Shown: positions 2,652-58,094 of the stretch, piece by piece
Layout: every line of letters begins with the position of its first letter
Position numbering within the stretch: the stretch's first letter is position 1
Assembly: GCF_964204645.1 (NCBI RefSeq)
Contig: NC_134030.1
Location: 21,846,210 to 21,910,209 of the forward strand
Reading direction: 5' to 3'
DNA from: Tubulanus polymorphus
Taxonomy: Eukaryota; Animalia; Nemertea
DNA length: 64,000 nucleotides
Position numbers and translations under genes: made by a program
The notes under the pieces: model-generated
Database searches by the model: none
What the model was told of the DNA's origin: nothing
What the model saw: the letters and a program-made list of their open reading frames with translations, nothing else

Positions 2652-2693
<42 letters not shown>

Positions 2694-26400: not shown

Positions 26401-28736
26401 AATCCCTGCCGAGGGAGGAACGTGGCAGAGTCTCACGATGTCATCAGGTTCGAATCCCTGCCGAGGGAGGAACGTGGCAGAGTCTCACGATGTCATCAGG
26501 TTCGAATCCCTGCCGAGGGAGGAACGTGGCAGAGTCTCACGATGTCATCAGGTTCGAATCCCTGCCGAGGATGATGGGTCTACTATGACAGGGCTTAAGA
26601 ACTGTGCTAGGTCAGATATAACTTTTACTAATGTTTTGTTTGTTTTTCAATCAGATTTTGCTGCACCAGTTTACAAGAAATCCAGTGAAAATGAAACAAA
26701 TGCAGCGTATATTGTAACAGTTAATAGTAACCCATTGACTCAACAAGTTACATGTGACCCTCCAGCTGTCGTTCAAAAACTATCAACCTATCAGTGGAAT
26801 ATAACGATACCTATCGTAAATAGTACCACAACTGACTATAGAGGGCAGTGTTTGGCTGATGGTATTAATGAAAGGGTCATTAATGTCACTGGTTATCATC
26901 ACGCCCGTCCAACTGATGAACCAGGTAAGATTCCGGGTCACAACTGGGTGAATTCTATCTGATTTTGAACATTAAAATGATTTAATTCCATGAAACATGA
27001 TAAAACTCGAGGCCATCATCTCTTAACTCGAAATCATTTCTACACAATCAAACAATGTACTTACGAAAGTCGTTATTTTGATAAATTGTCACAAAATAAC
27101 CTATTAATATATTTCATAGTCTCAATTTACTAAGTCACATTACTGGAGTTGTCTCTATCATTGGGTCTCATTTTACTAGGTGTAAGTCGTCATTCATTTG
27201 AGTCGTCACAATTCGTATTCGAATCAGCCACCAGTATTTTACCTAACCTGTAACTCAATTAGATTAGTCAGTACAGCGGATGAGTCTTATGGGAAATCCG
27301 TGCGCGATGACGTAATTCTCTGTGTCGTCCGAACTGAATGTATTTTTTGTGAATATATCACATTCAAATATTTCGCAATGATTTAGCATCTTTAACTTTC
27401 TATCTTGAGGCTGCTTGACCCAATCAAGGAACAATTAATTTTCTCCCATTTCAAAAACAACTTATATACTTCATTTAGAGAAAATTTGAGCTTTGAAAGT
27501 TAAGAAGCAGTTACTTTTTGCTTGACCTATTTAATAATTCAATTCAATTGCTGTTGTTTTTATCAATAGTTACAATGGAACTATTTCTAGCTTTATATAA
27601 TTCTATTCAATCGCATCACTGATTTGTTTAAATTTCAGTTCCAGAAGAAGGGACTGGGGGAATAGTGTTTGCTGTAATCAGTATACTGATATTACTGATT
27701 CTGATAATACTGTTTATACTGTGTCTTTTTGGTTGCTGTAAGTTTTACATAAAACCATCATTTAATCTGAAAAACAATGATAAACAAACTGCAGAATCAG
27801 AATACTGTGTTATTTCTAATTGACAGTGCGGTGCAGAAAACCTGATGATGAACTGTGTAGATGTGGAAATTGTAAGTTATGTAATAATTCAAATAAAGAA
27901 AGCTAGAAATTGAAAATAGTGCATAAGGCCGAATGTATTCTAGAGCCCTAAGATAACCAGATACAGTTGATACTCAATTATCTGTCCACATTTTTAATCT
28001 CGGGACCCTAGTTGCGCAGTATCATTCAAAAAGTGTTCGTAAACTATTAATCTGGTCTTAAGTTGTTAGTTCGGCTACAAAACTAAAACTGTCTTTAACT
28101 GGCCTTGAATGTTAGCCATCACTGTGCACATTACAAAACATTTAGTTGAAACACACAATAAAATGATGTTATCTGCAATCGTAGATTTTCCCCTGACAAA
28201 ACCGGTCTCGATAACTGAGAGTTCATGAGGTCTGAAATCAGTCACACTTCTAGATTATGCTTAAAATTGCATACATGGGCTTAAAGAAACAACACAATTT
28301 TGTGTGCTTGCGTTTGACAAAAGATGACGATTCAAAAAATGATTGTATTGTTTTTGTTTTTGTTTTCAGCACTGAATTTCAATAGTATAAGCCGTGAACT
28401 AATGATTTGTAATTGTCGCACCGAGGACTCGTCGGACGATGAACTATGTGTTTGTTGTTGCTGTAAGTGTCATAGAAAAATACCATCGTAGAATCGTAGA
28501 AAGGATTATCGCAAATTAGAATAATTTGTTTGTTTGTTTTTAGTGACTTGCAAATTACCTGCTGCCGATGAACCTGATAATGAGGATGATTCCTCAGATG
28601 AACTGTGTCATTGTTGCTGCTGTGAGTTCTATATATAAACTGATAAAGATTAATAGTCAGTAACTGTAGAATAAACGGTTGTATTATTTTCTATTTGCAG
28701 TGGTGTTGAGAAGGGAGCCGTGTACATGTAATTACT
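23474..28736 (+). CDS. Receptor C1, 5' part: signal peptide + furin site, four Ig-like exons, TM, Cys-rich juxtamembrane exons (no stop reached)
   Basis: Exons 23474-23561 (MNNWIRLLILLLEISFNSEAASIRNKRNT), 23953-24237 (ITC...W...YKC), 24747-25082 (CTC...VKWY...IQC), 25854-26189 (YTC...QWE...FRC), 26655-26924, 27639-27737 (TM GIVFAVISILILLILIILFILCLFGC), 27827-27871, 28370-28462, 28544-28621, 28701-28736. All phase 1, one domain per exon as in IgSF genes. Confidence 0.88.
23622..24000 (+). repeat. 82-bp tandem repeat containing the Ig1 splice acceptor (5 acceptors; 3 in the paralog 63067-63280)
   Basis: ttcag|cacctgatggagttg starts at 23625, 23707, 23789, 23871, 23953; in C2 at 63070, 63152, 63234. 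Confidence 0.95.
26318..26569 (+). repeat. 52-bp tandem repeat (~5 copies) containing a Pol III B box GGTTCGAATCC
   Basis: Unit gtggcagagtctcacgatgtcatcaggttcgaatccctgccgagggaggaac; related sequence at 22843-22890. Confidence 0.9.
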
Positions 28737-29761: not shown

Positions 29762-32700
29762 TACCGTGTTTGGGTCCGAAATCTAAAGATGTGATTGAAT
29801 TGTTGCGTTGGACAAGTGAAACCTGGTATGAAAAAGGTAAGATTCTCTCACATGATTTACTGCACATATTCTCAGATATCGGTTTGATGATTTTAGGTGT
29901 TGTTTTCTCTTTGTAGATTATGAGAATTGGGTGAAAACACGTGACCACCTGCAGCCAGGTATTTACAGAATTATTAACCCTTTATTTCTATAACATGTAG
30001 AATATCTTGCATGAATACAGTTCATAGTTTTAGAGATCATCCACTAATCATCTGAAAGATACACAACTGATTTGCTTCATTATCAAAACCGTAATTATCA
30101 ATTTAAGTTTATGGTTTGTTAACAACGTAATTTTTGACTATTTTATTGTATGTTTTTGGTAGATGTTTAATACAATTAACTGACAATTATTTCTATCTGT
30201 GAAGCACATTTGTAATAATGGCCTCCTAGATTAACTCACTGGATACAATGGAAACTCGTTTACGCAATGAAATAAACCAAATAATTTGGACCAAGAAACT
30301 TTTAGATTTTTCAGAAACTATTCCATATTCACGTACTAAATCCTGGACTTCACTTGTAGCAAGTGAGGATCCATCAGGTGCAAGGAGGCAATTCCTTGCT
30401 ATTTTTAGGGACTGACCTTTTCGTGAGAAAGAAGAAAAAGCATGTGAAAATCCCTGATAATGTGTTTGCCTAAGCGTTGTTGTCGTCGTTAACCGGCGCT
30501 TTTTTTCGGCAGTCCTCCAGTTCATGGTGTTTCATCGATCGTCCATTGATGTGTTTGGTTGAATGACTGGACTGGTTCCGGGTCAGGCGTATAGTCTGAT
30601 CGTGCCTAGAACGCGTCACCACGCATCTAATTTCAAAACGTTTCCCGCGGGAGGACACCCACTAATTTAACCCTCCCTCAAATCCTGGATCCGCCACGTA
30701 AGATGCGGCAATTGAGGATTCCCATTGAAAATCAACTATACACGAGAAACGTTTTTGGATGTCGTTTTTTCATGTATATTTGTAGCTAATATTTGTGTTG
30801 TTTTGTTTAACAGTTAAAACTGGAGACTTTGAGGTCATTGAAACATTCAGTCCAGGTATATTTGATATTTATTGTAATTTCATTTCAATAAAACAATATA
30901 AACTCAGATAATTCAGTTATAAATCAACTACTTGTTCGTAACGTCGATGAATTCATTTAAACAATTAATTCATTGTCAATTTTTCTTTCTAGAAATTGTT
31001 AGAATAATTGTCGATGTTTACGGAACTGAGAATGATTGGATGATAATGAGAGATAAGGATAAACAAGGTAAGAGGAGTGATGACTCAGTTGCCAGGGTAA
31101 GAGCCAAACCGGCTGATTGGTTTATTGCAACCCGGGGCCGGGTTAATAGACTGGTATTAACTTTAAACCCGGGGTTAGTTTAATTAATTTTCAATTGAGT
31201 TAGCCCCCGGGTTAAAGATAATACCAGTCTATAAAACCGGGTCCTGCATACAATACTGTACCGGAATATAACACTTCCCCGGGCCTCCTATCTTCACCCA
31301 ACAGTAATTCAAACTGTTTGATGCACAGGTTTTTTTTATTATTGAAAAAAATGCTTTCTATATTTCATTTCAGCAATAGCTATCAGAGAATTCATGTTCC
31401 AACAGTTATCACATGATGAAAGTAAGTAATTGTTACCTATAGTTAAAGCTATGAACATCACATGTGCTTTATGTGAATATGCACATATGAATTCAGTTGA
31501 CATGCACTTGTGAGTTATATGCACATGTTCATGTTATTATTTGTTTTACATTCATGAGTAATGCATGCATGTACATGTGAATGATACTTACATGTGAACA
31601 TGTGCATGTGAGTTTTAACTGCGCATATGGTTTGTTAACACGCACATGTGTTTAAGTTTAAGTAGAGTTTGATCAATGTCTATGTATTTTCAGGTGTGTT
31701 AGATTTGGTGAAAGAAATCCTAAGTAAGTTTACGAAACGACTCAGTATTTCCTCTTCAACTCGAATCATCGATTCAAATGTGTTTGTTATTATTTATTGA
31801 CAGGAAAATACGCGAGAATAAACAATTTAAAAACGAAACTATCAAATGAGATCGGTAAGATTTGATTGAATACAGTTATTGATGTATGAGTTTATTGATT
31901 ATTATTCTACTGTCAACTCATTTTGTAAATGTATTACAGATACATTACTGAACAAGAACAGGTCAATAGATGGCGCTGATGCAGTTTACAATAGAGATGA
32001 AGGTACTTTATTATTCACTGTTCAAATGAAATATTCAACTTTGCTGATAGAAATGTAACGAATTCTATTCAACATGGCCGCATGGCAGCCTTTTGGCAAT
32101 AATGAATAAACCTGATAAAAGCGACCAGTTTAAAATTTCATCTTAAACATATCAGACTAGAGCTTCAGAAATACTCAAGTTACAACAAAATTATCAAATT
32201 TACAATTGTTATTTAAGAAATAAGATGTGATACAAAGGGTAATGATACAATATGATACAGAATTTCAATTAAACTAATTTCAAATCTATTTTTTCCGTGT
32301 TTCAGATGTAATTCATGTTAGTTTTATTACGCAATCTAATGAAGAGAAAAGACCCCTGACAGACAAAGAGAAAGAGTTCATCAGAGATGGTCAGTAAAAC
32401 TATGAATTCTATCTCTGAGTTCAATTTTCACATGTAGTTGACTACACGGGTTACCACGAGTCTTAAGAGTGTTTAAAGAACTTACTGGCGAAAATGGCTT
32501 ACTTTTTGGAAAAAAGTAGTGATTTACTGTGTCGCTAGTGTTTAGGATTTATCTGTATTTATCGATTTGCAAAATAAAACGAGCGCCAAAGGGAAACTGC
32601 TCTGCGTGAATCACACTGAGCGTAGGTTTTTTTCGTAGGTTTCAAATCCCCAGTAAACGGTTATTATGAATTTCATATTTTCAGTTGCTTCAGCAGTTGA

Positions 32701-35700
32701 ATCTATTGTTGATTTCTTTGCTAAAATGTCCGGTAGGTTCCATAAATCATTTCAGTAAAAATACTGTGGAGTTTGTTGTGGAATCATTGAATAATTGGTT
32801 TATTTTTACTGTAGATGCTGAATTATGTGAACGAGGAATAGCCAACATTAAACGTAGGTTTTAATTCTCATTTATCCTCAACAGAGTGTATAAAATACAT
32901 GTGCGCTATAATCTACTGTACATGTTGTACATGTCAGTTCTCTGTACATATTCATGTGAGTTCTCTATATACTTACGTTTGTGTTCGCGATCTGTACATG
33001 TACATGTCAGGTCTCTGAAGAATTTGTAAGTTCTGCGGTAAAAACTTTTACTTATATTTCAGCTACTGATGAAATTGCTGGTAAGTTATAATATTCACTA
33101 TGATGTTTAAACTGGTGCTGAGTCTGTTCAATCATAACTGAAATATCGCTGTATCTTTTTATAGAAATGTTTGTGAAAGAAACACTTGATAAAGAAATTA
33201 AACAACAGAATGGTGAGTGTTCAGTTAATCTAGAAATCTATCAGGGGGGGGGGGGTTACAACTGTAAACTGATTACATATTAAACATATTTTGTCTAATT
33301 ACAGAAATACTCGTCACACAAATAGAAAACCAGAAAGTAACTGATAAAACAAAGATAGGTTTGTTATACAATAAACTAATTATCATAATCTATGGTGATT
33401 TATTCAGATGTTGTCAGTAAATCCTGTTAATCAAACTTCTGACATATATGTAAATACAATTACAGATATAGGACTGGCCGACCGGAACCGTTTTGTGTAC
33501 AAAGATGATTGCGGTAAGACTTAAAATATCAAATATCCTTTTATTATTTTTTGCACTTCATGACAAATCGTTTTAGATTTCTGAGGTATGAATAAAACCA
33601 GACATTAGACATGAATTCATCCGCTTTATGGGAAATTCCAGCTTTTATGAAATCCAGATGTATTTGGATAAAATTCTAGTTTGAACTGATCTGGTCAATA
33701 TTCATGTTATTCTATTCATGTATTCATTTGTAGAATCAGTTTTATTGGCGTCAAGTTTGCAGAAATTAGAAGAGAACAAACATTCTACTGAACTAGATAG
33801 AAGTAAGTGTAAACTTTCTTTGTTTGTATGTATGAACCTGTTTTTTGTGCTCTGTGCAAATGGAAATTTTGTGGAGCAATAAATTGTTATTGTAATTGTA
33901 TGAAACTATTCGGTCACATTTTGTATTGATATCAATATTCTTCATGATTAAAATCAGTTGCGTAGTTACTCGGTTAAATTGTCGGTTCAAAATGAATCAT
34001 AGCATCATAGTGAAGGATGTCCTAGTTGGCTCTGACAATATCTATGTAACTTCTTCCCTAAAGAATGGCTTCGGGTGGACTTCTGCCAAATGTTCCATTA
34101 CAGGAAATTAGTTTTTGATCTGATAATTTAGTTGTTTATTTCAAACAAGAATGTTATGCAGGAACAAACTTAATCGTTAGCTTTTTGGTTGTCACGCTAT
34201 CCAAGAAAGGGTGGCTCTCACAATATTCAGACCATTTCATCAGCAGGATAACTGAGGGTGGATTTTTGTAAAAATGTTGCATTTTTGGAAATTGTTTTGT
34301 TATTTTGTTTAATTTCATTGTTCAACTATATTTTCAGGTATCTATCTAATAAGCCGAGATGTTTTAGGTAAGAACTGCTAGTAACAAACTATGATCATTG
34401 ACGTCTAGGGTCGAAAGCAGACCCTTTAAAAACAAATATCAGCATAAAAACTTAAAAGAGAATTTTTAGTCATTTTTCGTTTATATTTCTCTTGATTTTC
34501 TGATATGTCAGAAACTTGTTGGATCGAATTTTTATCAGATATTTAAAAGAGGTTTAGAATAGAAGTGTTATGCTGTGTTTGATCTAACCTCATTGTGAAT
34601 TATGTTCTTTTTTTAGAAATGAAATTGAAAATCGCAGTTTTTGAATCTATCAAAGGTAAGACTTCATATAGATTGCATCAGAATCAGCCGGGTTTATTCC
34701 ATCATTTGCCAAGATTCAACCTGAGCTCAATTTGTTTTCTGAGAACTCAATTTCTGTTCTGATGTCATTTTCCTGGTAATTTATCTTGACGAATCACTTT
34801 TAGAATTGTACGCTGAACGAGCTGAAAGATTTCAGAATGAACTCAAAGAGAAACTGAAACAAGAGGAAAATGAAGAGAGAAAAAATGAGGAGGAATTGAA
34901 CAGAATAATTCACAGTTCAGTTTGTCAGGCGTTTAAATCTATCACTGATATGAATGAAAGTAAATATCGATTTTATATCTCAAATTATACATGGACTTAA
35001 CATGTCACATATTATGTGTTAATGAATGCACATGTAACATGTTCATGTGAATGAATACACATATAACATGCTACATGTTACATGTGAATGAATGCGCATG
35101 TAACATGTTCATGTAAATTAATGCACATGTTGCATGTTTAGTTCTCTGATATATTTCAGAAACTCTGATGGATAATAAAGTTGTAGGATATGGAGGTTTG
35201 TATATAATTCACATGTTTCAATCACAAACCAGTTTTTATCGTTAATAATCTGTTTGATTTTCTCTATTTATATTTCAGTGAGTCCAGAAGAGATAAGTGA
35301 GTTCTGATTGATATTTATAAATATTCCCAGTACAGTAGACTGCGCGCTTGCCTCTGATTTCATGTTGTAATTCGTCATATTTACCTGTTTATAAGTTGCA
35401 GTGATTTTCTATATTGATAGATTCTAAACTACGTGAATTAGCCGATAAAGAGTTTGAAGACAGAACAGGTACTGTACACATTACAAAGTGTGAAGACGCT
35501 TCAATGGATTGATTTGATATCGGTTACCCTAGATCCCGAGTGTCGTACATAGAAAGCAAGCTAACCAGTAGACCATAGACGTATAAACTAGTCTAGTTTA
35601 TACGCTCATGAGTAGACCAATAGAACTGTTTAGTGTTTATACAGCTTGTCCTATATGGGTAACGCTGTGACCTTTTTGTGCCCAAAAAAAGTTCATTTTC

Positions 35701-38700
35701 GCCCTGATTTCCGAGACCTGTAGTTTCCGAACGGTTTCCCATTTTTCATTGAAGTTCGTTATGGATATTTTTCGAAGGGCTCTTAAACATATCAGATGGG
35801 CTGACGTTGAATAATGGAATTTAGTAATGTTTTAAATTGTATTGATGTTTATGATCAATGTTTATTACAGTCGGTATAAAGACACTTGAAGAAATATTGC
35901 CTCTAAAACTGAATATACCGCACCAAATCAGCACTGGTAAGTGACTACAGTGAAACTGTATGTTTGAATTGGAATTCAATACAGTAAACTTTAAATTTGT
36001 CGAGAATCAGGAAAATCGCAAACTTAAGGAATCTTTATTTGAATTTAATCTAATTTGTAGACTTGTATTCAGCTGGACGAGATCCAGTTATTCTGCCGAA
36101 TCGAGCAGGTATTGTATAAGTCCGTAAAAAACTTAAGATAACCAGTTTAATTCCATTCCATAATCATGCCGTTATCAAACGCCAACATATTTCAGGGAAT
36201 AAATCCCGCAAATCTAAATTCAGTGGAAATACCATTCTTTATAATGCCTTGTACTTCATCGGTCCCAACTGTTGCATCATGAAGGACTTTCACTGTGAAC
36301 AAAATTTGAGTTTTTTAAGAGCATTAGCCTGAAATATTCTGCAACTGATCTTTGTCCCTGAAAGGACGATTAATTCTTCTAAGTTCTTGTAACGAATCCT
36401 TAAACTGCTCGTTATTAAAACCAGAAAATGCTCTTCCGTCATATACCTAATTGTGAGGTTAAGGCCCTGATAATGGTGTTCTAACCCTGGTTTACTGGTA
36501 TTTTTGATGTCAAAATGCAAACTTAAAGCAATAACGGTTTTAAAATGAAACCGCACTCAATGAATGTTGTGTCTATGTTTGCTGTTTTTATGTGAATTTC
36601 AGTGGAATATTTCAAGGATGAATTCATTAGCGCAATACAATCTGATGAATTATTGAAAACTGCTACTCGAACTGCTTTAGTTAACAGTAAGTTACATCTA
36701 CAGTAAACTACATTTACATCTACAGTAAACTACATTTACATCTACAGTAAACTACATTTACATCTACAACAAACTACATTTACATCTACAGTAAACTACA
36801 TTTAATACATCTACAATCAACAATTAGATACATTTATTCACTAAGATTGTCAATCATAGAAATTTGTTTGTGGTTTTTTAGAATCAAGTAAAATCAACGA
36901 ATTGTTGAGGAAAGAAAAGTCGAATGGTAATATTGTTTGATGAAATGTGGATAAGATGTTTGCTTTTACGAACCGAAAAATAATTCAAACGTTTTTCTTC
37001 TATTTCTTAGTTAATAGAATTTATGATGAAGTGAAAAATAGAATAGAATCAATGTCTACAGGTTTGTATTTTAATGATTTTCTATCAATTCTTGCATTTA
37101 AATGTCGGATATATTTCGATCCTCGTGTTGAGGTTTCTTTTCATAAAGCATATTATAATATATCATATTTCGCATAACGCAGTGGCTACTCGTACGAATA
37201 ATTCCGTAGGCTATTCGTACGCACCCGTCGGATAGCTCTGGAATTATGTGTACGGGAAGGGATAGGGTTAGGGTAAGGTGAGGCTATATGTAGTTAAAAC
37301 ATTCGACCGACCGTCAGCGAGCTCGGTGGTCTAGTGGTACGATGCCGGCTAGTAATTTACTAGCCCGGGTTCGAGTCTCGCTCAATCCGCTCTATTTTTC
37401 TCTAACTCTATTCTCCACACTTTCCTTGAATTTTTTGCTAAGTCGTGCACCTCTGTACGCATGCGCGGCGTTAATCGGCCAATCAGCGACAGTTATTAGC
37501 GTACAGATCCTAGTCCCGTACGAATAGTCTCCAGAGTAATCCGTACGGGTCCGTACGAGTAGCCACAGCGTTCTCATAAACATGTCATATCATATTATAA
37601 ACCACTAGCATATACAATAATAATATATAAAATGTGATTTTGAAGGTGATGAGTTTTGTTTTACTTTTTATCACGGATTGATTCATTGCTGAATTTACGT
37701 TATTATTTCTATTTGTGATTTCAGAGGAATTAAATGAACGAGGAATCGTAGTTTATAGAAGTGAGTAAAAGTCAATTTGTCTGATTTGAATTCTAATCTG
37801 TTCATCAATTCCATAGTTTTCCTGCTCCATAGTTACCCTGATCCCATATACTCCTAACAAGAGACTCCCAACACTAGAATCATAACCCCTCAGTTTTTTA
37901 AATTCAGATTTAGATCAAATTAAGTAAGAATTTTATAGTAAAAGTGAACTGTATGAATTTATCTGTTTAGATCTACTCAATGTTTATATAAGAATTATTG
38001 TTGTTTTCTGTTTTTTTTCAGTAAAAGATGAAATAGCGAGTAAGTACTGATAACAACTTCCATGTTAAAGTTTAGATAAATATATATATATGTCATGTCC
38101 TGTTTTAAATAGTAGTGGTTCTTATTAAAATCCAGTGAAACCGTTTTACAGATGATGAAAATACTTCCTTCAAGACTAAAGGAAGGATTGTGAAAGAAGA
38201 ACATGTTTCCCTCTCCCTGCAGTAATCTATTGTGTTTATTCTGTTTCAGTGTTTCATATCAGACCAATTATTGCAAACAGAATCCAAACGGAATTTAAAG
38301 GTGAATACATTGTGTTGACTGTTAAGTGTTTTAATTAACAAATTAAATCGGTACCGAGAGTAAGAGTGGTCGACTGGTACTGAGTAAGGGTGGCGGTCGA
38401 CTGGTACTGAGTAAGGGTGGCGGTCGACTGGTACTGAGTAAGGGTGAAGGTCGACTGGTACTGAGTAAGGGTGAAGGTCGACTGGTACTGAGTAAGGGTG
38501 AAGGTCGACTGGCACTGAGTAAGGGTGAAGGTCGACTGGTACTGAGTAAGGGTGAAGGTCGACTGGTATTGAGTAAGGGTGAAGGTCGACTGGTACTGAG
38601 TAAGGGTGAAGGTCGACTGGTACTGAGTAAGGGTGAAGGTCGACTGGCACTGAGTAAGGGTGAAGGTCGACTGGTACTGAGTAAGGGTGAAGGTCGACTG

Positions 38701-41700
38701 GCATTGAGTAAGGGTGGCGGTCGACTGGTACTGAGTAAGGGTGGCGGTCGACTGGTACTGAGTAAGGGTGGCAGTCGACTGGTACTGAGTAAGGGTGGCA
38801 GTCGACTGGTACTGAGTAAGGGTGAAGGTCGACTGGTACTGAGTAAGGGTGAAGGTCGACTGGTACTGAGTAAGGGTGGCGGTCGACTGGTACTGAGTAA
38901 GGGTGAAGGTCGACTGGTACTGAGTAAGGGTGGCAGTCGACTGGTACCGAGAGTAAGGGTGAAGGTCGACTGGTACTGAGTAAGGGTGGCGGTCGACTGG
39001 TACTGAGTAAGGGTGAAGGTCGACTGGTACTGAGTAAGGGTGGCAGTCGACTGGTACTGAGTAAGGGTGGCAGTCGACTGGTACTGAGTAAGGGTGGCAG
39101 TCGACTGGTACTGAGTAAGGGTGAAGGTCGACTGGTACTGAGTAAGGGTGAAGGTCGACTGGTACTGAGTAAGGGTGAAGGTCGACTGGTACTGAGTAAG
39201 GGTGAAGGTCGACTGGTACTGAGTAAGGGTGGCAGTCGACTGGTACTGAGTAAGGGTGGCAGTCGACTGGTACTGAGTAAGGGTGAAGGTCGACTGGTAC
39301 TGAGTAAGGGTGAAGGTCGACTGGTACTGAGTAAGGGTGGCGGTCGACTGGTACTGAGTAAGGGTGAAGGTCGACTGGTACTGAGTAAGGGTGGCAGTCG
39401 ACTGGTACCGAGAGTAAGGGTGAAGGTCGACTGGTACTGAGTAAGGGTGGCGGTCGACTGGTACTGAGTAAGGGTGAAGGTCGACTGGTACTGAGTAAGG
39501 GTGGCAGTCGACTGGTACTGAGTAAGGGTGAAGGTCGACTGGTACTGAGTAAGGGTGAAGGTCGACTGGTACTGAGTAAGGGTGAAGGTCGACTGGTACT
39601 GAGTAAGGGTGAAGGTCGACTGGTACTGAGTAAGGGTGGCAGTCGACTGGTACTGAGTAAGGGTGAAGGTCGACTGGTACTGAGTAAGGGTGAAGGTCGA
39701 CTGGTACTGAGTAAGGGTGAAGGTCGACTGGTACTGAGTAAGGGTGAAGGTCGACTGTATTTTGTAGGAGGATATTTGACGCTGTAGCAACATAAATAGT
39801 TTACATCATCAGTCGATATCACAGTTGTTTCTAATCAACAATGTATAATTACAGATTCACTAGAGACTGTTTTAGAAGAGAAATGTAAAGAGGCTCTCAA
39901 TTGGTGGCCATCAAAACACTGGGCATATGATATATTTCGCGCGAGTAAGTTCACAGTGAAATCAGTTTGTAATTTATAATAGAATTCTATTGTATAAAAA
40001 CTTGTCTATTGTTTATTACATATAGTGTCTGTACTCAGTGAATTTACCAGTACAACTTTAAAGATAAACACAGGTTATTGGAAACAAGTCAAACAATGTT
40101 TCGGTAAATAATAAATTCATGTTTCACTACTGATTCTTTTTCAATGATCTGATTTTAAGGATGATCAATAATTGTTTGTTTTGTTTGAATAGGAGATGAA
40201 ATTGACAGTGAAACAAATACAACTGAACTGACAGAAATAGGTGAATATCAATACAACAACATAATATTTCCAGATTAACAAAAATTATTTCGAATTTTGC
40301 GTTGAATTCATTGAAGATCGAAATTCATCAATGTGATCAGATCTTTAGAGGCATCTGTTTTGGTTCATGGGTTACACAGTATTATCAGTTGAATTCTCGG
40401 CTCAAAATCAATCATAGCTTGAAAAAACCATGTTTAGAGTGTGAAACTAAGAGGTGTTTGAAAATCGTCACTCTTTGGTAACATTTTGTATAGATGTGAA
40501 AATTTAATTTGTTTATAGTTGATGGATGTTTGGGTGAATGCATTAAAACAATGAGTGATAAATGGAACACTGGTGAGTACCCCTCATATAATGGCTGATA
40601 AGGGCCATGAAAATATTTCCTGACCAAAAATTATTTCGTCATGAAAAATAATATTCCATCGAAAAATGTTCGTAAGTAAAAATAATTTCGTTGTGAAAAA
40701 TAAATTCTCATCAAAAATATTCATAAGCTAAAATAATTTTATTAATAATCGCCTCCTAAATATAGGCGTGAGAAAAAATAATTCCGCTATGAAAAATAAA
40801 TCGCCTTCCTTCAAAATATATTCCGATGACAAGATATTTTTGCAGCGTAAAAATAATTGTGGGTTTTTCCGTTAGTGCACGCGTGCGCGCACGCGCTAGT
40901 CGCTAGTCACCCCTGATCTAGCCCTAAGTATAGTATAGTGGTACACACTGTGTGCATAATATACTTAAACTACACGGGCACAGCTCTCACTTACACATGA
41001 ATCAGGGTACTACGGTAGAGCTTTGGTTTATTTTTATCCTGAAATTTTTTGATGAGTCCTTGTGAACTAACTTTAGGAAGGGTGGGATGGTGGTGATGTC
41101 GTTGGGTCCATGTGAACACAAATTATGTAGAGGCATTTAAATGAGGCTATTCAGAGTTGAAACAAACTGCAAAGTGAACAAGGTTAAGCGACAGTTTTCT
41201 ATGAGGTTTAATTTCATGTTTTGTTATTTCTAGGCGATTTTAAGAACCGCAAGATGATTGTAGGGAAAGGTAAATATTCCGTATATAATTCCCTTAGAAC
41301 CGGTTCTATAGTCATCATTACAATTGAGACCAGTCTAAGACGGTCTCGGTTCTACAGCCAATAAACAACTTAGAACCAGTCGTAAGATTTAAGACGAATT
41401 TTGGATTCAATTTTCGATTATGGAGCCGGCCACTGGTTATATCAATGAAAAACCAATTTCATCATGAAAATCTGTTTGATTTTCTATCCATTTATATTTC
41501 AGCGAGTCCAGAAGAGATAAGTGAGTTCTGAGATGAGTAGAATTTATTTTAGATTTTCACTATTTTGATCTATAAAGTGATTGTTATGTATCCAGTGACA
41601 GGTATCTGTGTGAACTGGTGACCAAAATCACAAATAATTAATTAATTGTCTTCACTAAAATAGAAACCAGTTGTCAATATCATCCCATGGTGGACCTAAA

Positions 41701-42785
41701 ACCTTAAGTCGCACTTATCTGTTTATCAGACAGTTGTAGTCAGCGCTTGCCTCTGATTTTGTGGAACCAGTGAATAATAGTGACGTCGAATTACAAGTCA
41801 CACTAGTTTGTTTAAGTCAGTGATTTTCTATATTGATAGATTTTAAACTACATGAATTTGCCGATAAAGAGTTTGAAGAAAGGAAACGTGAGAGAGGTAC
41901 TGTACACATTACAAAGTGTGAAATTCAACATGTTTTATGTTTTAAATCTTATTGATGTTTATTATCAATGTTTATTACAGTCGGTAGATTTAATCAAATA
42001 AAGACACCTGATGATCACATAAAGACACAAGATGCATCATTCGAATGGGTAAAGACACTTGAAGAAATATTGCCTCTAAAACTGGATATACCGGCACAAC
42101 TCCGCTCTGGTAAGTGACTATACTGAAAAACTGCATGTCTGAATTTGAATTCAATACAGTAAACTCTGCCTGGAATAAACTGTTATTATTTCACCGAGTT
42201 GAGAATCAGGCAAATCCTTTTATCAAAAAACTTTCAGTATTTTCAAAATGTTAAGATTCCATTTAAATTTCTGTAGATTTAGATTCAGCTGGACGAGATG
42301 CAGTTATTCTGCCGGATCGAGCAGGTATTGTATAAGTTAAGTCTGTAAAAACTTAAGGTAACCCGTCACTGCCCTCATAACGCCAACATATTTCAGGGAA
42401 CAAATTCCGCAAATCTAAATTCAATGGAAATACCATTCTTTATAACGCTATGTATTTCATTGGTCCCAAAAGACTTTAACTGTGATAACAAAATTTTCAA
42501 AGGTTTTTTATGCCTGAGATATTCTGCGACTGATCTTTGTCCCTGAAAGGACGAATAATTCTGCTAAGTTCTTGAAAATCCTTAAACTGCTCGTTAGGAA
42601 TACCAGAAAATGCTCTTCTATCATATGCCGGATTTTGAGGAACAGACCCTGAAAATGGTGTTCTAATCCAGGTTTACTTTTCTTTTGTATGTCCAGAAGA
42701 GAATGTCTTTTAGTAATAATAATAATTAATAATATTAATAATAATTAATAATATTAATAATAATAATAATAATAATAATGATGAT

Positions 42786-42821
<36 letters not shown>

Positions 42822-45800
42822 TATTTAAAGCGACAACAGTTTTAAATTCAGAAACCACACTCAATGAATCCTGTGTTTGCTGTTTTTATATGAATTTCAG
42901 TGGAATATTTCAAGGATGAATTCATTATTGCAATACAATCTGATGAATCATTGAAAACTGCTACTCAAACTGCTTTAGATAACAGTAAGTTACATCTACA
43001 GTAAACTGCATTTGTGTTCATCTGTAAGACTACATTTACATCTACAGTAAACTAAATTTACATCTACAGTAAACTACATTTATATCTACAATAAACTACA
43101 TTTTCATACATCTACAATCAACAATTAGATACGTTTATTCACTAAGATTGTCAATCATAGAAATTTGTTTGTGGTTTTTTTAGAATCAAGTAAAATCAAC
43201 GAATTGTTGAGGAAAGAAAAGTCGAATGGTAAAATTGTTTGATAAAATGCGGATGCGATGTTTGTTTTCACGAACCGAAAAATAATTCAAACGTTTTTCT
43301 TCTATTTCTTAGTTAATAGAATTTATGGTGAAGTGAAAAAGAGAATAGAATCAATATCTACAGGTTTGTATTTTCATGATCTTCTATCAATTCTTGCATT
43401 TAAATGTCGGATATAATATATCCGACATTTAAATGCGAAATATTATTTCGATCCTCGTGTTGAGATTTTTTTGTCATATAGCATATTATAATATATCATA
43501 TTTCTCATAAACATATCATATCATACCACTATCATATACAATGTCATCAAGTACATATATAAAATACGTATATCACATATCATATCACGTCATATCATAT
43601 CATTTATGCTTGTAAAATGTGATTTTGAAGGTGATGAGTTTTGTTTTATTTTTATCACGAATTGATACATTGCTGAATTTACGTTCAACTTCTATTTGTG
43701 ATTTCAGAGGAATTAAATGAACGAGGAATCGTAGTTTATAGAAGTGAGTTAAAGTCAATTTGTGTGATTTGAATTCTAATCTGTTCATCAATTCCATATC
43801 CTGCTCCATAGTTACCCTGATCCCATATACTCCTCACAAGAGACTCCCAACACTAGCATCATAACCCCCCAGTTATTTTTAATTCAGATCTAAATCAAAT
43901 TAAGAATTTTATAGTAAAAGTGAACTGTATGAATTTATCTGTTTAGATCTACACAATGTTTATATATGAATTATTGTGTTTTCTGTTTTTCAGTAAAAGA
44001 TGAAACAGCGAGTAAGTACTAATAACAACTGAATCGTTAAAGTCTTCATAAACAGATATTTGTCATGTCCAGTTTTGAATAGTAGTGGTTCTAATTGAGC
44101 GCTAAATCCAGTAAACCGTTTTACAGATGATGAAAATACTTCCTTCAAGACAAAAGGAAGGATTGTGAAAGAAGAACATGTTTCCCTCTCCCTGCAGGAA
44201 TCTATTGTGTTTATTCTGTTTCAGTGAAACACATCAAACCAATTATTGAAAACAGAATCCAAACGGAATTTAAAGGTGAATACTGTTGACTGTTAGGTGT
44301 TTTAATTAACAAATTAAACCGGTACCGAGAGTACGAGTGGTGGTCGACTGGTCCCAAATAAGGGCGAAGGTCAACTGGTACTGAGTAAGGGCGAAGGTCG
44401 ACTGTATTTTGTAGGATATGTGACGCTTTAGTAGCATTATTAGTTTACATCATCAGTCAATGTTGTAATAGTTTCTAATCAACATTGTATATTTACAGAT
44501 TCACTAGAGACTGTTTTAAAGGGGAAATGTAAAAAGGCTCTCAGTATGTGGTCATCAAAACACTGGGCATATGATATATCTACTGCGTGTAAGTTCACAG
44601 AGAAATCAGTTTGTGATTTACATTAGAATTCTATTGTATAAAAACTTGTCTATTGTTTATTACATATAGTGTCTGTACTCAGTGAATTTACCAGTAGAAC
44701 TTTAAAGACAAACACGGGTTATTGGAAACAAGTCAGAGAATGTTTCGGTAAATGATTAATTCTTGTTTCACATCTGAATTGTTTTAGTGATCTGATTTTT
44801 TATGTTTTGAATAATAATTATTTGTTCTGTTTGAATAGGAGATGAAATTAACAGTGAAACAAATACAACTGAACTGACAAAAATAGGTGAATATAAAAAA
44901 ATTCAGATAAACAGAAATATAGTATTGAATTCATTGAAGATGAAATTCATCAATTTAATCAGATCTTCACAGAGACCTGTTTTGATTCAGAGCAATTTGA
45001 ACTAATTTCAAACTAAGAGCGCTTGAAAGTCCCGACCCTTTGGTCACAGTTTGAATCAATGTGAAAATTTATTTTTGTTTATAGTTACTGAGTGTTTGGG
45101 GGAATGCACTAAAACAATGCGTGATAAATGGAATACTGGTGAGTACCCCTCATGAGTACTTCATATGAGTACTCCTCATGAGGACCTCTCATAAGTACGT
45201 CTCTTGAGTACTTTTCATGAGTGAGTACCGTATTCAAATAACTATCAGCCATCTTGAGTACGTTAAGTAGAGGACTCAAATACAAATCGGAAACTGAGTA
45301 CCCGAGTACCATATAGAAACTATCAGAAGTTTAGTGAGTAACACAAAATAACTAATCTTCTTTGAGCTTTAATTTCATGTTTTAATATTTTTAGACGATT
45401 TCAAGGAGAAATTCAAGCTCTACGGGATGATTGTAGATTCAGGTAGATATGAAAATTCATTCACAGGCAAAAGATGAGACTCAAGCTTGAATTGAAATAA
45501 ACTGGTCCCTAAATCGCCATCAAACTGTTTAATAAAGTTTTCTAACTTAAATTCTGTCTCTCAGTTTCAGTTCAGTTTAGTTTATTCACTCCACAAGTTA
45601 TAATAACATTGCACAGAGCACAAAAGTAGCGCATAGATTACAGCATATTACAAAAAATATAATGATAGTATTAATAATAATTATATTTATAATAATAACA
45701 ATTATGATAATAGTAAAAATAATAATACTAATAGTGATAGCAATAATATAATACTTATAATAATAATTGTAATTATAATGAAATTATAATGCAAAAGATG

Positions 45801-48800
45801 AGGCGGAATAAACCATTTTACAGTTGCTAGCCGCCATTTTGTTAGGGTACTTTTGTCCCGTATTGTTGGGTCATTTTTTTCTCCTTTTTAAAAACTATCT
45901 GTGATGCGTGTTGTATCATATTTCATCTGTCCCTGAATGGATTTTGACAGTTTCAGCAACATTCAAACCGCGTGAATCTCTAGTTTTCAGTTATGTAAAA
46001 ATCATTTCTCAAATTTACAACAATGCGACATGAGAGCGATATAAAAATCGGTGGTCAGTTTTTGCCGTGCGCATAGAAATCAAGGGTACTGAAATTTGAA
46101 GTTCGTTATTTTCAGAAATAATTTTTTAAAAAACCCAAACATTTCAAGAACTGTGCGCATAAATGCCCTCTTTCAGGTGAACTTTGAAATGTTAAGATAT
46201 CTTGCCTAGTTTTTTTCCTATGGCACTTTAACTGCAGCGCGTGTATTGTCATTCCGAGATTCGGCGCTGTTTTCTTTGCGTGTATTTCAGTATATGGGAG
46301 TTATTTCTTCATTTTCACTACGAGTTGTTAGGTTTGCTAGTGAGGTAGTCATTCGATCAACTTTTTCGTTTACTTCCGGTAGAATGCTGATTTTCTGAAG
46401 GATTTCCTGGAGCAGAGTCTCGATGTTGCTGCAGCTCTTACACTAGTTGGTGGACATTTTTGTTCCTTTTCTTTTTCAGTATCGCTTTTTTGCGCACGCA
46501 TTTGTTAACGGGAATACTGAGCGGTCATGTCAGATTGACGACTGCAATAACGGGAATAATGAGCGACCGGGAGTCACAAGCTTTGGTTGTTTACAGCTCG
46601 GTACTTTTTGTTCAGTAGAGCGGAACGATTTGAGTTCGGATCGGTTGTGTATGTCGAGTATGCACCACGATTGAATTAAAAATGGCGACTTATTTGAAGC
46701 AATTCCAATTTAAACACAAAACCAACAGAACCAACAAAAAGAAAAGTCAATATCTGACGAACGGCGATTTCTGCAGAGCCGTCTTTCTTACACTATAACG
46801 ATCTCCTCAACTTTGCGCTAATTTAATATCAGCTGATTTGTGTTAAACGTGTTAAGCAACTATTAAAGTTTGAGCACACTCACGTACGGTTTTCCTCGGT
46901 GAAACACGGTCTAGGGCAGCTCTTGTGGCTTCAGATGCTGCCCAACGGTTCCTTCGACAGTATTCCAAAGTTCGAAAGTGTTTAGATTTTAAACGTAGTC
47001 ACTGTTTTACTTTGAGCGGTAATGTTTAAGGACTATAGCGAAAACACGTCGACCGATTCCGCCATCTTGAATTGTCTACATCCATCTTGCACGTGCTGGT
47101 CGCGGAGTAAATATTCTAATTTCTTAGAGAATGTCATTGAGTTAACCATTAATTGTTGTTTACAAATACAAATGTTTTCGACAAACCGCAGTCATCAAAA
47201 ATCTTAATAAATAACAGTCAGGGGCTCTTAAACCTATCCTTAAGATACAGGTTGAAAGATATTTTATAGAGAATGTTGCATTAAGTTTAGTTTGTTTGCA
47301 CGAAATCATTTTAACCCACAAGTTTATGATTCTACACTTAACAATTGTAGGAAAAATGCCAGGGGTATAAAAGTACAATAGTAAATATAAGTACACGCTT
47401 GGGGTAATATACATTATCAAATCAGCAACGTTTTAGGAAATTTAAAGAGGGGGAACTTAGGGTACTTAAATACAACCAAATACAGCCAAATACAAACAAA
47501 TCAACCAAATACAACAAATAAAACCAAATACAACCATATACAGTAATTAGTTGGAAATAGAAAGAGATCATTGATAAGATGACTGATAATTAACGCATTC
47601 AACTTGAATCTATGTAAATAACTGAATTTTTTCCTACGATGGTATTTTTCCTACTACACAATAAGTGGCATTTTTACCGGTGGCATTTTTCCTATGTCGC
47701 AAAAGTTTTAAAAGTTTCTAAATGTGTCTAAATTCGGAATGGTTTCGAGAAGTTCAGTAAGAAGGGTGCAATCAAAGAGAAAAATTAATCCCCAGAAACA
47801 TTGCAAATTGGGCACATTCTTTCATTTCTAGGGAGATGGAGATTTGAAGTTGTCCCGGGAAAAAATGTATCCAGAAAAATTATGTCCCAGGGAATAAACG
47901 CCCTCGGAAAAAATGTCCCAGTCTATCATTACTAATTTGGTAATTAAGAAAATTTCATATCAAAATAACACGAGAGAACAAACTTGTTAATTATGTAAAT
48001 TGCACACTAAACATCAAAATAAAGAATTCATAAGTGATCATACGAATTATCAAATTTTAGTATCAGTTCGTTTTGCTTATTGAGAATTGTTGTCAACTCA
48101 GTAAGAAATCAAAATAATTATTTCATTCAGGGTTATCCTGATAATCAAAATGTATGATTAGTGGATATCTCGGTGTATCAGCAAATGATTTCACTTAAAT
48201 TCATATTCGTAGAATTCGATAGATGATTCCATTAAGCTTAGATTGTTTGCCAGATACAGTTTTACACCTAAAATTAATCATTCTACCTCAATGAACAAAG
48301 GATAACGCGCCCTAACTCTGCTAACACCGGTAAATACTTCGTCACTATCATTAGAATTTTGCAAAAATACATATTTTCTAATGAGTCCAAATTTTCATAT
48401 CCGCAGACCTCGCAACCATACATGGCAACAGGGACAACAAAATAATAATTTAAACGTTACGTCGATTGGAAGTTTCAAGCGCCTACCTTTTTGAATAATC
48501 GAAAACATAGCTCTCATAGCTTTATCGTAAAGATATTTTCTCGCTTTTGCAAAACTTCCGTTCCAGTTAAATGTAACTCAGAGATACACATTATCTTCAA
48601 CTTCAATCTCCAATTCCCGATTACCGAACATAAATTTCTGAATTCGCACAAACAAAGACTAATATTTTCGTTTTATTGACGTTTATCCCGAGTTCAGATT
48701 TGCTATAAACGATTAAGTTGGGTTGCCACGGTCATTAAAAAAGTCCTCAATATCATTCAAAACCTAATGAAAAGGCGACAGGTTTTCTTGTCTTTCTGTC

Positions 48801-51800
48801 TTGTCCTTCAGACCAGTGCTGCCCTCTAACGTATGAGATGTAACTATTCCGTTATTTGTATTGTAGAAGAGATTGTGAATGAGGTAAAACACGCACATTT
48901 TCAAACTCGCGAATTTAAAAGTAAGTTTCCAATAAAATCAGAACCTGTTTTAACAACACGAACTCAAATATTAATATCTGTATGTATTGTATTATTATTT
49001 ATAGAATCAGTTGAGACTGCAGTGAATGAAGCTATCGAGAATTCAGGTAATTAAATATTCTTCATAAGTTCGCATTCTGTGTTTGAATTGAGTTCAGTTT
49101 GGCTGAAGGTGCTTCTTTAAATGTATAAACTTATATCTTACAGAAAAATCACAATACGGCAAAAAACCAAACTATGAAGCTGCAGGTTTGTAAAACTCTA
49201 ATTTCTGTAAATGAATTTGACCTGATGTGGTTGCTGCCCTGGACCGAATTTCATAGATTGGGGGGGGGGGGCAAAATATTCCCCTGGACCCAGTTTTATA
49301 GACTGGTATTATCTTTAACCCGGGAGTTAACTTAATTGAAATTGAATCAAGTTAGCCTCCAGGTTAAAGATAATACCAGTCTATAAAACCGACCCCTTGG
49401 CCCTGGAAACCTTTTGAAAATTGTCAGTAGTTAACATAGTTTCTCAATGTTGCTATGGTGGTTGTCAGCCTGTTGAGGATTTTCCCCAAGAGGATCATTC
49501 ATTTATTACGTATGCAAAAAATTCAGAAAAAGCCTCGAGTAAGCTGATAATAGTTAGATCGAGTCTATTATGTAGAAAAAGAGTGGATGAAAATGTAGTC
49601 ACGTGATGAAATCTATTCGGAGCAGAATTGAATTTAAAAAGTCATTAAAGTGCGCACAATACGCATTATTATTTACCCCTCCCCCTTTTGTACACAATTG
49701 TATGCTGTATATTTAATAAGACCCCTTTGTACAATTTGATTTTTGAGTTTAACCCCCTCCCTACCCAAAATGCGTACCTAATAAATGGGTGACCCCTTAA
49801 AAGGTAACTTTGAAGCCGCCCTATGAAACTAGGCCCATGATGATGATGACCACAAAGATGAGATAATTTTCAGTTGCTTTCCATTCAGAATTTTATTCTA
49901 TTATTTCAGTGAAATGGATAGTTGATGAAATGAAAGGTAAATTGACCAGTAATAATACTAAATTTGGTGAAAGGAGGTCTCTGTAACCAGGAAGATTATG
50001 TAATATTCTGTTCATATATCTTATTATTATTTCAGAGAAATGGATAGCTGTTGAAATTAGGAGAGGTAAATTGACTGATAATAAATACTCAGTTTCATAA
50101 TGAGTTTGTGTTGATGTTTACAAAAGAATTCTAATTTCAGGTTTCACGGTTAAACCATCTGAAACATCATATGGTATGTAATATAATTGTTATATACAGT
50201 TGATTATAACGGTCGCTGTCATCGTTTTTGTCACTGTCACTGTTCACTCAACACGAACATTTTTCAGAGAACAAATTTGTAAAATCAAACTCAAATTCAA
50301 TGAAAATACCATTTATAAATCGCCAAAATCATTATGAAGTCATATTTTTCATTGGTCCCCATAGTGGCTTGACTATATTTATACATGTATCTTGTGTGGA
50401 TGCCTCATCAGTCAGTCAACTGGGCGGGAAATTGAGTAACAATTCACTAAATATCCTGATGTTTTTTTCAGAACGTAATGAATTTGCTGAACGTGCACGA
50501 GAAAAAGGTAATGAATAAATTATGAGTGTTAAAATTGATGTTATCGATTTTGATAATGTTTTATAATGTTAAACGTAATTTAATTTCTATTTCAGTAATT
50601 AAAAAATCAAGAAATTTGATGGATGAGATACGTGCTATAACAGATAAAAGTAATCAATATTTACTTCTATAAACATTTTACTGACTAATATTTCCATATT
50701 CATGAATTCATGTTTCCACATTTATATATAACGTGTCATATGGTCCCCAAACCGGGAAATCAGGAATTTCAGAATATTCTTTAAATTCATTTCGCGCTTC
50801 AACTTTCTTCGGCAATCTTTCCTGAAAATCATCAACCAATCACCAGTAAAATGACGTCACTGTAGTGTGTGATGTTATCTGCTTAATTTCCATCTGAAAT
50901 GAAAAATCACCCATGAAATACTCGGGTTTATTGACTTCATGTAATTGTGAGAACTATCCATAAATTCTGTTTTGAGTTCGATCACAAACTTGTTTGGTCT
51001 TTACTTCTTTACATTTGAAGTAGATCTGATGTTATATGTGAATGATATTGCTGTTTATAGTTTGGATGCATCAGTTTTTCAAGAATATTTCTTTTCATTT
51101 TCAGAAAAATTTTAAAAAAGCCTGGTTTCCTGGTATAGTTCATACAAAATTTTCATTTTTTTCAGAAATATTTTATTTTATTTTCAGAAAAATTAAAAGA
51201 TCTCGGTTTCCTGGTAGATGATTCGAGTAAGTAAATTATACAGTCATCACTTTAGGATTTAAACCATAATCAAATCACAATTAAGTTTGGGATGAAATTA
51301 AGTTTCGTGTTCGTTGATGAGAATCTGATGTATGATTAAACCGGTTTAATCTGGATTACTGGCGGGACACCGGGATGAAATTCATGTAGTTTGAGAAATC
51401 CAGATTTAAAATCGTATTCCATGAGATACTAGTTGATAATTAAATAAAGATTAGTAACCGAATCGAATCTGGATTAAACTGATCTCTTTCCCGCATGGCA
51501 TTCATCGATCTACCGATCTATGTTTTCGGTAGATCATTAAACGTCAGTTCATTCCTTTGTCGGAGATCTCATAAATATGTATGTGGTGTAAGGAACACTT
51601 TGGACTTAATAGAACACCCAGAAAAAATCAAAGCTAATTCTAACTGAATCAGGGGTGGAAATAGTTGAGGTATTATTAACCATTGTCACTGTTAACAGTA
51701 AAGCCGTAATTAGTTGAATTTTCAAGTGGTTGTTCATTTTATGAAACAGACTGTAGCGGGTGATATATAGTTGTATAAAAACAGTTACAAGCTGAACACA

Positions 51801-52153
51801 TCTAAAACAGAGTAAACTCTAGGGGCCACTGATAAAGTATTGTGAATATAAGTTAAAGTTGACGGGTATCTACATTTAGGGAGTGTGCAGTTGTATTTGG
51901 TGTTTGGTTTATATTGTACATTTTGTATATTTTTATAGAAGTTACTCATACAAGTAATGAAACTGCTGGTGATCGTAGATCAAGTATTGACCAGACATCG
52001 AGTAGTGGCGTTGGGCCACCTGGTGGTGATATAGTGAAATATGAAAATGAACCTAAAAGTGGCTGTAGTCAAAGTGCTGCTGATGATAGTCACACAAGTG
52101 ATACCGTACCGAGTGGTGATCGTGAGCGGGGTGATGGTAGTACAGTAGTCTAG
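29762..52153 (+). CDS. Micro-exon chain (copy 1), ~60 exons, ~1,100 aa, ending ...GDGSTVV*; probable continuation of receptor C1
   Basis: Phase-1 exons: 29762-29836, 29917-29958, (30315-30362 possible), 30814-30855, 30993-31067, 31374-31421, 31694-31723, 31804-31854, 31940-32002, 32306-32389, 32685-32732, 32815-32853, 33063-33080, 33165-33212, 33305-33358, 33466-33513, 33734-33802, 34338-34367, 34617-34655, 34804-34959, 35160-35195, 35279-35296, 35421-35468, 35871-35936, 36061-36108, 36603-36686, 36882-36926, 37011-37061, 37725-37760, 38022-38039, 38250-38300, 39855-39944, 40026-40103, 40193-40240, 40519-40572, 41234-41269, 41503-41520, 41840-41896, 41981-42109, 42277-42324, 42901-42984, 43184-43228, 43313-43363, 43708-43743, 43994-44011, 44225-44275, 44499-44588, 44670-44747, 44839-44886, 45085-45138, 45395-45442, 48867-48920, 49005-49046, 49144-49185, 49910-49936, 50036-50065, 50141-50173, 50472-50507, 50596-50649, 51188-51226, terminal 51939-52153. 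Exons from 35160 onward have paralog support; earlier ones rest on splice signals and frame only. Confidence 0.82.
31133..31245. mobile_element. Short palindromic MITE; second family member at 49285-49397
   Basis: atagactggtattaactttaa / ttaaagataataccagtctat inverted arms at two non-paralogous sites. Confidence 0.75.
37176..37572. mobile_element. MITE with 21-bp TIRs, 5-bp TSD and an internal tRNA-like segment
   Basis: aacgcagtggctactcgtacg / cgtacgagtagccacagcgtt; flanks cgcat/ctcat; empty site tttctcataaac at ~43501 in the sister cassette; A/B boxes at 37327-37379. Confidence 0.85.
38350..39757. repeat. 27-bp minisatellite (gagtaagggtgaaggtcgactggtact)n, ~52 copies, intronic
   Basis: Directly visible; ~3 units at 44323-44403 and ~1 at 7840-7866 in paralogous introns. 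Confidence 0.97.
45480..48800. mobile_element. ~3.3-kb composite insertion (probable LINE and MITE fragments) in an intron
   Basis: The paralogous intron 11082-11168 is only 87 nt. The insertion has a LINE-tail-like end at ~45570, a decayed minus-strand coiled-coil frame (IETLLQEILQKISILPEVNEKVDRMTTSL) and short repeat arrays at 47470-47920. Confidence 0.6.
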
Positions 52154-57700: not shown

Positions 57701-58094
57701 CAGCGATCAGAAAGTTACTACAGATCCGTACGTGAATATCGAGGCCGGGAACGACAAAGACACAACTCCGTACATGGATATGGCAGCCGCGAAGGGTAAA
57801 GATACAACTTCATATATAGATATGGAAGCCGGGAAGGGCAAAGACACAACTCCTTATATGGATATGGGACCCGGGATAGAAGAGGATACGTACAGGAGTA
57901 CGGAAACCGGGAAGGACAAACACACAACTCCTTACACGAATACCGGAGCCGAGAAGCGCAAAGATAGACATAGTTACGTGAATACCGAAGCCGGAAAGGC
58001 GCGCCATTTGAAGAAAGATACTGATGAACCCGTGAAAGATGATGTTGAACTTTATTCTTACGCTACTGTTCAATATACTCGCAATAGGCGTTAG
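54780..58094 (+). CDS. Receptor B2 (paralog of B1)
   Basis: Exons 54780-54879, 55374-55694, 56419-56458, 56891-56933, 57223-57332, 57584-58094; same lengths and phases as B1, ORF intact. Confidence 0.9.

Follow-up and report, generated by a model that had tools for sequence, protein, structure and literature searches.

Introduction

To our knowledge, long arrays of symmetric micro-exons are known mainly from secreted proteins of schistosomes, and the immune receptors of nemerteans are almost undescribed. The micro-exon genes (MEGs) of schistosomes contain long runs of small symmetric exons, evolve rapidly and have no homologs beyond their lineage (PMC4350168). They have 10–20 exons, mostly of 15 nt, and their products are secreted or exposed at the surface (10.1101/2023.06.21.545858). 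Among animal receptor systems, the Alr genes of Hydractinia form a cluster and encode receptors that cross the membrane once; their Ig-like domains are divergent, their exons are shuffled and their tails vary, and the family has V-set, I-set and Fn3-like ectodomains and an ITAM or ITIM in the tail (10.1101/2022.03.04.482883). In Botryllus, the genes for a fester-family receptor and for a co-receptor with tyrosine motifs are duplicated as units (PMC11507803). The sea cucumber protein AjNLRC4 is a pattern receptor with an Ig-TM-NACHT organization, two transmembrane (TM) segments and no LRR; receptors of this type function in microbe binding and phagocytosis (PMC8699970).

Here, we describe a micro-exon array from the palaeonemertean ribbon worm Tubulanus polymorphus, located in a 64,000-nucleotide stretch of DNA (referred to below as the window), and compare it with these systems.

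Results

Identification of the exon array

The window is animal DNA with a GC content of 35%, in which a cassette of ~40 kb is present in three tandem copies. A frame-blind scan for splice sites over positions 27700–52000 yielded 57 candidate exons, 49 of which had a length divisible by three (binomial p=3e-16 against 1/3), and nearly all of which were open solely in the phase-1 frame. In the upstream copy (copy 0), 21 of 23 candidates from such a scan had lengths divisible by three. Curation brought the number of internal exons in 29762–51226 to 60, of which 59 were retained; candidate 30315–30377 was discarded, as its donor was weak, it lay on a repeat-depth spike and it was missing from RefSeq. 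The 59 exons are 18–156 nt long (median 48), all multiples of three and phase 1-1, and encode 1,026 codons in total; the introns of this run measure 75–3,424 nt (median 216).

With the third Ig exon as the query, we retrieved RefSeq proteins of T. polymorphus, and the 59-exon gene model proved to be identical, letter for letter, to XP_074652383.1 (LOC141906847; 1,652 aa, 70 coding exons). A preliminary description of this DNA had reported the 59 symmetric exons and the recurrence of 26 such internal exons in copy 0 (56–12769). The scan and the RefSeq identity confirm the former, and the 26 exons do exist and belong to the paralog LOC141906693. The description had cautioned that exons before 35160 were chosen partly on frame, a reservation that can be lifted because the RefSeq protein is identical. 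Two of its figures require adjustment: the micro-exon region, given as ~1,100 aa, exists but consists of 1,026 codons plus a last exon of 70 codons, and the phase 1-1 series begins not at 29762 but already at the first Ig exon (23953).

The micro-exon feature is therefore real and already present as a gene model in RefSeq, where it is labelled merely “uncharacterized”; our literature search found no publication on this receptor family. RefSeq models with 18-nt exons are usually based on RNA-seq. Three public sequencing runs (X1–X3) covered the introns evenly and had no joints at exon boundaries, and thus behave as DNA.

Organization of the receptor

Together, the 59 exons encode the cytoplasmic tail of a receptor with type-I topology, which starts at position 23474 and has a signal peptide, four Ig-like domains, one TM segment and a Cys-rich linker. 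The parts upstream of the tail are as follows.

23452–23561, + strand: signal-peptide exon (ATG at 23474, ends in phase 1; matches the start of XP_074652383.1)
23953–26924, + strand: four ectodomain exons, phase 1-1 (23953–24237, Ig-like; 24747–25082; 25854–26189, C2-set-like; 26655–26924)
27639–27737, + strand: transmembrane exon (Kyte-Doolittle 3.68 at residue 447)
27827–28736, + strand: four Cys-rich juxtamembrane micro-exons (27827–27871, 28370–28462, 28544–28621, 28701–28736)

Pfam matches to the ectodomain were below the cut-off (Ig_2, E=8e-4, for exon 1; C2-set_2, E=0.04, for exon 3), and such Ig matches are weak yet recurrent. For domains 2 and 4, the Ig-like assignment is based solely on size and context. 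The TM exon provides the sole above-threshold hydrophobicity peak of the whole protein, and the micro-exon part lies C-terminal to this single helix in a protein with a signal peptide. The tail and linker micro-exons (59 and 4, respectively, all multiples of three) account for ~1,110 of the 1,652 aa, and the cytoplasmic tail comprises ~1,180 aa. The Cys-rich linker exons are missing or decayed in several paralogs and are common to the NACHT-type relatives described below; their Cys clusters suggest possible palmitoylation or metal binding.

A tandem repeat of 82 nt (23617–24009 and 63067–63290; three to five copies) consists of the acceptor and first 57 nt of the Ig1 exon, and each copy ends at a GT, 25 nt ahead of the next acceptor. 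This type of repeat may have been a route by which micro-exons of lengths divisible by three originated in the array.

Structure of the tail

The tail consists of about seven helical units of 120–200 aa, generated by the duplication of blocks of exons.

29762–32853, + strand: unit 1, 11 exons (29762–29836, 29917–29958, 30814–30855, 30993–31067, 31374–31421, 31694–31723, 31804–31854, 31940–32002, 32306–32389, 32685–32732, 32815–32853)
33063–35195, + strand: unit 2, 9 exons (33063–33080, 33165–33212, 33305–33358, 33466–33513, 33734–33802, 34338–34367, 34617–34655, 34804–34959, 35160–35195)
35279–37760, + strand: unit 3, 8 exons (35279–35296, 35421–35468, 35871–35936, 36061–36108, 36603–36686, 36882–36926, 37011–37061, 37725–37760)
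38022–41269, + strand: unit 4, 7 exons (38022–38039, 38250–38300, 39855–39944, 40026–40103, 40193–40240, 40519–40572, 41234–41269)
41503–45442, + strand: units 5 and 6, 15 exons (41503–41520, 41840–41896, 41981–42109, 42277–42324, 42901–42984, 43184–43228, 43313–43363, 43708–43743, 43994–44011, 44225–44275, 44499–44588, 44670–44747, 44839–44886, 45085–45138, 45395–45442)
48867–51226, + strand: unit 7, 9 exons (48867–48920, 49005–49046, 49144–49185, 49910–49936, 50036–50065, 50141–50173, 50472–50507, 50596–50649, 51188–51226)
51939–52153, + strand: last coding exon, Ser/Gly/Asp-rich, with the stop codon (70 codons)

Units 5 and 6 are a recent duplicate of units 3 and 4 (~73% amino-acid identity), and within unit 7, exon 50036–50065 duplicates the preceding exon, 49910–49936. 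Deep homology between units is only moderate (z 1.8–3.6), and pairwise hhalign comparisons between them gave weak matches (E 0.009–0.5). Exon 34804–34959 of unit 2 is coiled-coil-like. A partial copy of the acceptor and start of exon 51188–51226, with an in-frame stop, occupies 51075–51216 and is probably a dead pseudo-exon.

The preliminary description of a charged, probably helical protein of no recognized family holds: the tail contains 12% E and 11% K and is predicted to be mostly helical, and fold searches (Foldseek, VIA, Atlas) yielded no match to it. AlphaFold predicted a compact helical domain for unit 7 of a paralog (pLDDT mostly 80–94 over ~100 residues); its models for units 1–2 (pLDDT 39) and 3–4 (30–40) are of low confidence and unreliable. 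When the whole tail and unit 7 were used as queries against proteins 0.55–1.75 times the query length, homologs were returned from T. polymorphus only. Motif and profile tests of the 1,180 cytoplasmic residues revealed none of the known effector motifs, such as an ITAM, an ITIM, a death fold or a TIR domain.

Two alternative interpretations of the tail bear on these structural data. The first is that it forms a long helical stalk, or a cytoskeletal or membrane scaffold, resembling the bundles of the GBP, Sey1 and GVIN GTPases, with a length set by the number of units. Its predicted helicity fits, and by ESM Atlas features, both halves of the tail lie nearest to clusters of the Sey1 three-helix bundle, GBP_C and GVIN1 (0.85 and 0.94); we nevertheless regard a structural or adhesive role as quite improbable. 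The second concerns the 270-aa repeat formed by units 3 and 4, which might be a degenerate arginine-type ADP-ribosyltransferase, making the receptor an enzyme or pseudoenzyme. The second repeat of LOC141906847 matches PF03496 with 28 bits (cut-off 23.4, E=1.7e-6), a weaker match was obtained for 9 of 23 copies, and the first-strand Arg is kept in 20 of the 23. However, the match covers only positions 28–116 of the 196 in the profile and straddles a unit boundary, and neither the STS motif nor the catalytic Glu is conserved. Furthermore, hhalign gave a probability below 1% against eight phage Alt transferases and hmmsearch found none (the Alt profile represents a single subfamily), and no transferase was recovered from PHROGs, NCBIfam, PDB sequences or phage tblastn. 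A transferase identity is thus very hard to credit.

Exon skipping

The description had also proposed that skipping diversifies the protein combinatorially. According to this MEG-like interpretation, cells or tissues would skip differing subsets of the 59 exons, generating a large repertoire of tail isoforms. Every exon is indeed symmetric, and a stop codon arises at only 7 of the 1,653 possible skip junctions, a count in line with the argument that donors ending mostly in G or A rarely give stops at novel junctions (last bases over the 59 exons: G, 41; A, 16; C, 1; T, 1), but the standard splice consensus itself has G at −1. Symmetry, moreover, would arise automatically if the array had grown by the duplication of phase 1-1 exons. 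RefSeq isoforms differ mostly by one skipped exon, by small acceptor shifts or by loss of the TM exon; single tail exons are skipped in frame in at least six genes (exon 43708–43743 in isoform X2 of LOC141906847), and the TM exon is lost in two or three. In the isoforms P0062, P0068 and P0071, each from a different paralog, the TM segment is entirely or largely missing; such loss would release a soluble form with ectodomain and tail. In-frame skipping of single exons thus stands, but a repertoire is not shown by the one to four isoforms recorded per gene in this conservative annotation. Unit 7, as modelled, is one compact domain spread over nine exons, and random skipping would break its fold. 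The variable part is, in addition, intracellular, which the products of MEGs are not (PMC4350168). Large-scale combinatorial splicing therefore appears unlikely to us.

A tandem array of modular genes

About 18 loci carry the tail (the long exon 34804–34959 is present at 18), and the Ig3 exon is found 24 times at ≥73% identity. In the core array, long-tail receptors alternate with single-Ig receptors with YxxM motifs, ten copies of which are 96–99% alike; the two genes of a cassette are arranged head-to-tail. The window contains the following genes in addition to LOC141906847.

56–14555, + strand: copy 0, the 3' part of the upstream paralog LOC141906693 (26 internal exons and last exon; 27/27 exon peptides in RefSeq P0047)
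17284–20643, + strand: YxxM partner gene (a signal peptide, a single Ig-like domain and a TM segment, with three YxxM motifs in a 170-aa tail)
54780–58094, + strand: next copy of the YxxM partner
62319–64000, + strand: 5' end of the following long-tail receptor (signal peptide and initial Ig exons)

A candidate ITIM in the YxxM receptor failed the motif test, and the protein has no canonical ITIM.

Seven copies across 255 kb are distinguished by entire exons and exon blocks: some have lost linker exons, units 3 and 4 are single or doubled, units are partly lost, and individual exons are doubled. The RefSeq paralogs likewise display gains and losses of exons and units, so that the in-frame duplication and loss of exons anticipated in the preliminary description are directly visible. 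The family consists of modular phase-1 receptor genes trading exons, units and whole tails in frame; as all introns are in phase 1, unequal crossing-over can add, drop or swap each of these elements in frame. Most of the visible diversity is germline, between tandem paralogs.

Several other features of the region were recorded. A 69-nt satellite (12960–14054, 16 copies) lies in the last intron of copy 0, and its reverse strand contains the two core motifs of the hammerhead, CUGANGA and GAAA, on either side of a short stem; Rfam returned nothing at its cut-off, this satellite included. Located between the YxxM gene and the start of the receptor, a 21-nt repeat (21909–22434, 25 copies) has an open frame on each strand, of 221 and 185 codons. 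Satellites specific to individual copies, at 38368–39757 (27 nt × 51) and 4812–6913 (14 nt × 150), arose in single paralogs by the expansion of short motifs within introns. About 1.1 Mb from the array, near other Ig-family genes, an open frame of 1,977 codons contains a clear PF03496 match (47.5 bits; G000:C6:20705644-20706150). RefSeq P0013 (LOC141911244) has an N-terminal ubiquitin-protease domain and a C-terminal Ig-like domain of this family, and may be a fused model.

NACHT-LRR relatives

Depending on the paralog, the family ectodomain is followed by a micro-exon tail, by NACHT-LRR, by the two combined or by a short tail. RefSeq P0004 and P0001 share the ectodomain and TM segment and continue into NACHT (E=3e-14), HD2 and LRR; in P0005, a short tail follows these two parts. 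RefSeq P0056 combines tail units and NACHT in one protein, the N-terminus of which looks incomplete. At three loci, characterized by their coordinates and RefSeq proteins (C6:22.27 Mb, C9:0.31 Mb and C19:54 kb), units 1, 2 and 4 are followed, on the same strand and 3–4 kb past unit 4, by a single-exon NACHT-LRR; units 3 and 7 had no match at these loci. We found no NACHT exon in the window or in the array surrounding LOC141906847. Given the position of units 1, 2 and 4 ahead of the NACHT-LRR exon at three loci, we infer that the tail corresponds to the pre-NACHT region of membrane-anchored NLRs.

Coding status and selection

No stop codon was found in 329 tail exon copies (at least 512 substitutions), versus ~26 expected under neutrality, and the few cases flagged were boundary errors or decayed duplicates; only 86 of 443 intron indels were multiples of three. 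The dN/dS ratio was 0.53 (0.38–0.73) for the ectodomain, 0.65 (0.48–0.95) for units 1–2, 0.98 for the repeat, 1.39 (0.87–2.41) for unit 7 and ~1–1.4 for the distal units. Wrong-frame controls gave values of 0.5–0.95, so dN/dS alone cannot prove the frame, which rests on the absence of stops, the lengths divisible by three and RefSeq. In the distal units, codon positions 1 and 2 diverge more than position 3 (positions 1, 2 and 3: 0.121, 0.135 and 0.092 in unit 4; 0.145, 0.152 and 0.115 in unit 7), whereas the opposite holds in the ectodomain. These data fit a tail that is coding and fast-evolving, with weakly constrained amino acids. Positive selection on the tail is suggested by the sequence comparisons rather than established, because the dN/dS intervals are wide and the wrong-frame values similar.

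This pattern of divergence, together with the fusion of the units to NACHT-LRR at three loci, would be consistent with a fast-evolving tail mimicking the host targets of pathogen effectors and watched by related membrane NLRs. In plant NLR pairs, integrated domains serve as bait for effectors. Relaxed constraint would, however, yield nearly the same numbers, and the searches revealed no host protein similar to the units; we consider a bait or decoy function rather improbable.

Discussion

Proposed function

We propose that the helical units represent the effector or oligomerization region that precedes NACHT in membrane-anchored NLRs, and that it has been expanded in a NACHT-less gene into a scaffold for signalling. 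This scaffold would act with those NLRs and with the YxxM partner during immune recognition or the discrimination of self from non-self, and we give the interpretation as a whole an even chance. LOC141906847 would then be an Ig receptor of innate-immune or allorecognition type in a birth-and-death array, which kept and multiplied the pre-NACHT region without NACHT-LRR. Binding of a ligand outside the cell would cluster the tails, which could bind the same units on membrane NLRs, by a purely conjectural homotypic interaction, or shared effectors, and the neighbouring YxxM receptor would supply tyrosine signalling. Diversity would come chiefly from germline paralogs, with occasional skipping.

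A bolder version, in which a new NLR effector domain, built from interchangeable micro-exon blocks and combinatorially varied (by ~18 paralogs and cell-specific skipping), wires a repertoire of Ig receptors to membrane-anchored NLRs, is doubtful at best. If true, it would describe an invertebrate immune receptor system diversified on its signalling side and not on its ligand side.

At this locus of a free-living spiralian, a micro-exon array builds the partly folded intracellular tail of a receptor, with a fold that has no match. Tail modules have been traded between surface Ig receptors and membrane-anchored NLRs, and the young paralogs display ongoing exon shuffling, with swaps of single exons, blocks and whole tails. 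The paralogs define a candidate new N-terminal domain of NLRs.

Comparison with known systems

Like MEGs, LOC141906847 has most of its coding region in small symmetric exons that can be skipped in frame, evolves rapidly and is lineage-restricted. Unlike MEGs, it has 59 tail exons with a median of 48 nt (mostly 15 nt in MEGs) among 70 coding exons for 1,652 aa, where MEGs have 10–20 exons and a short product, and its micro-exons specify a tail inside the cell, in which one helical domain or more is well folded. The comparison drawn in the preliminary description holds for exon design alone; it fails on size and on topology, because the micro-exon part lies intracellularly, behind the single TM segment of an Ig receptor, and we found no sequence link between this tail and MEGs.

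The likeness to the Alr receptors of Hydractinia, which extends to clustering, a single membrane pass, divergent Ig-like domains, exon shuffling and diverse tails, is one of analogy only; the tail of LOC141906847 differs in having no ITAM or ITIM, in being far longer and in its construction from micro-exons. As with the fester pairs of Botryllus, a two-gene cassette is duplicated jointly, the partner carries tyrosine motifs and the genes form birth-and-death clusters. The Tubulanus genes are, by contrast, head-to-tail and have Ig-like ectodomains, the partner carries YxxM motifs and no canonical ITIM, and the main receptor has a 1,180-aa tail; this resemblance, too, is best read as analogy and not homology. 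Like AjNLRC4, LOC141906847 has extracellular Ig-like domains and a membrane anchor, and its paralogs P0004 and P0001 combine an Ig ectodomain, a membrane anchor and NACHT. Unlike AjNLRC4, LOC141906847 itself is without NACHT, and its Tubulanus relatives have one TM segment and an LRR region, three of them placing micro-exon units ahead of the NACHT exon.
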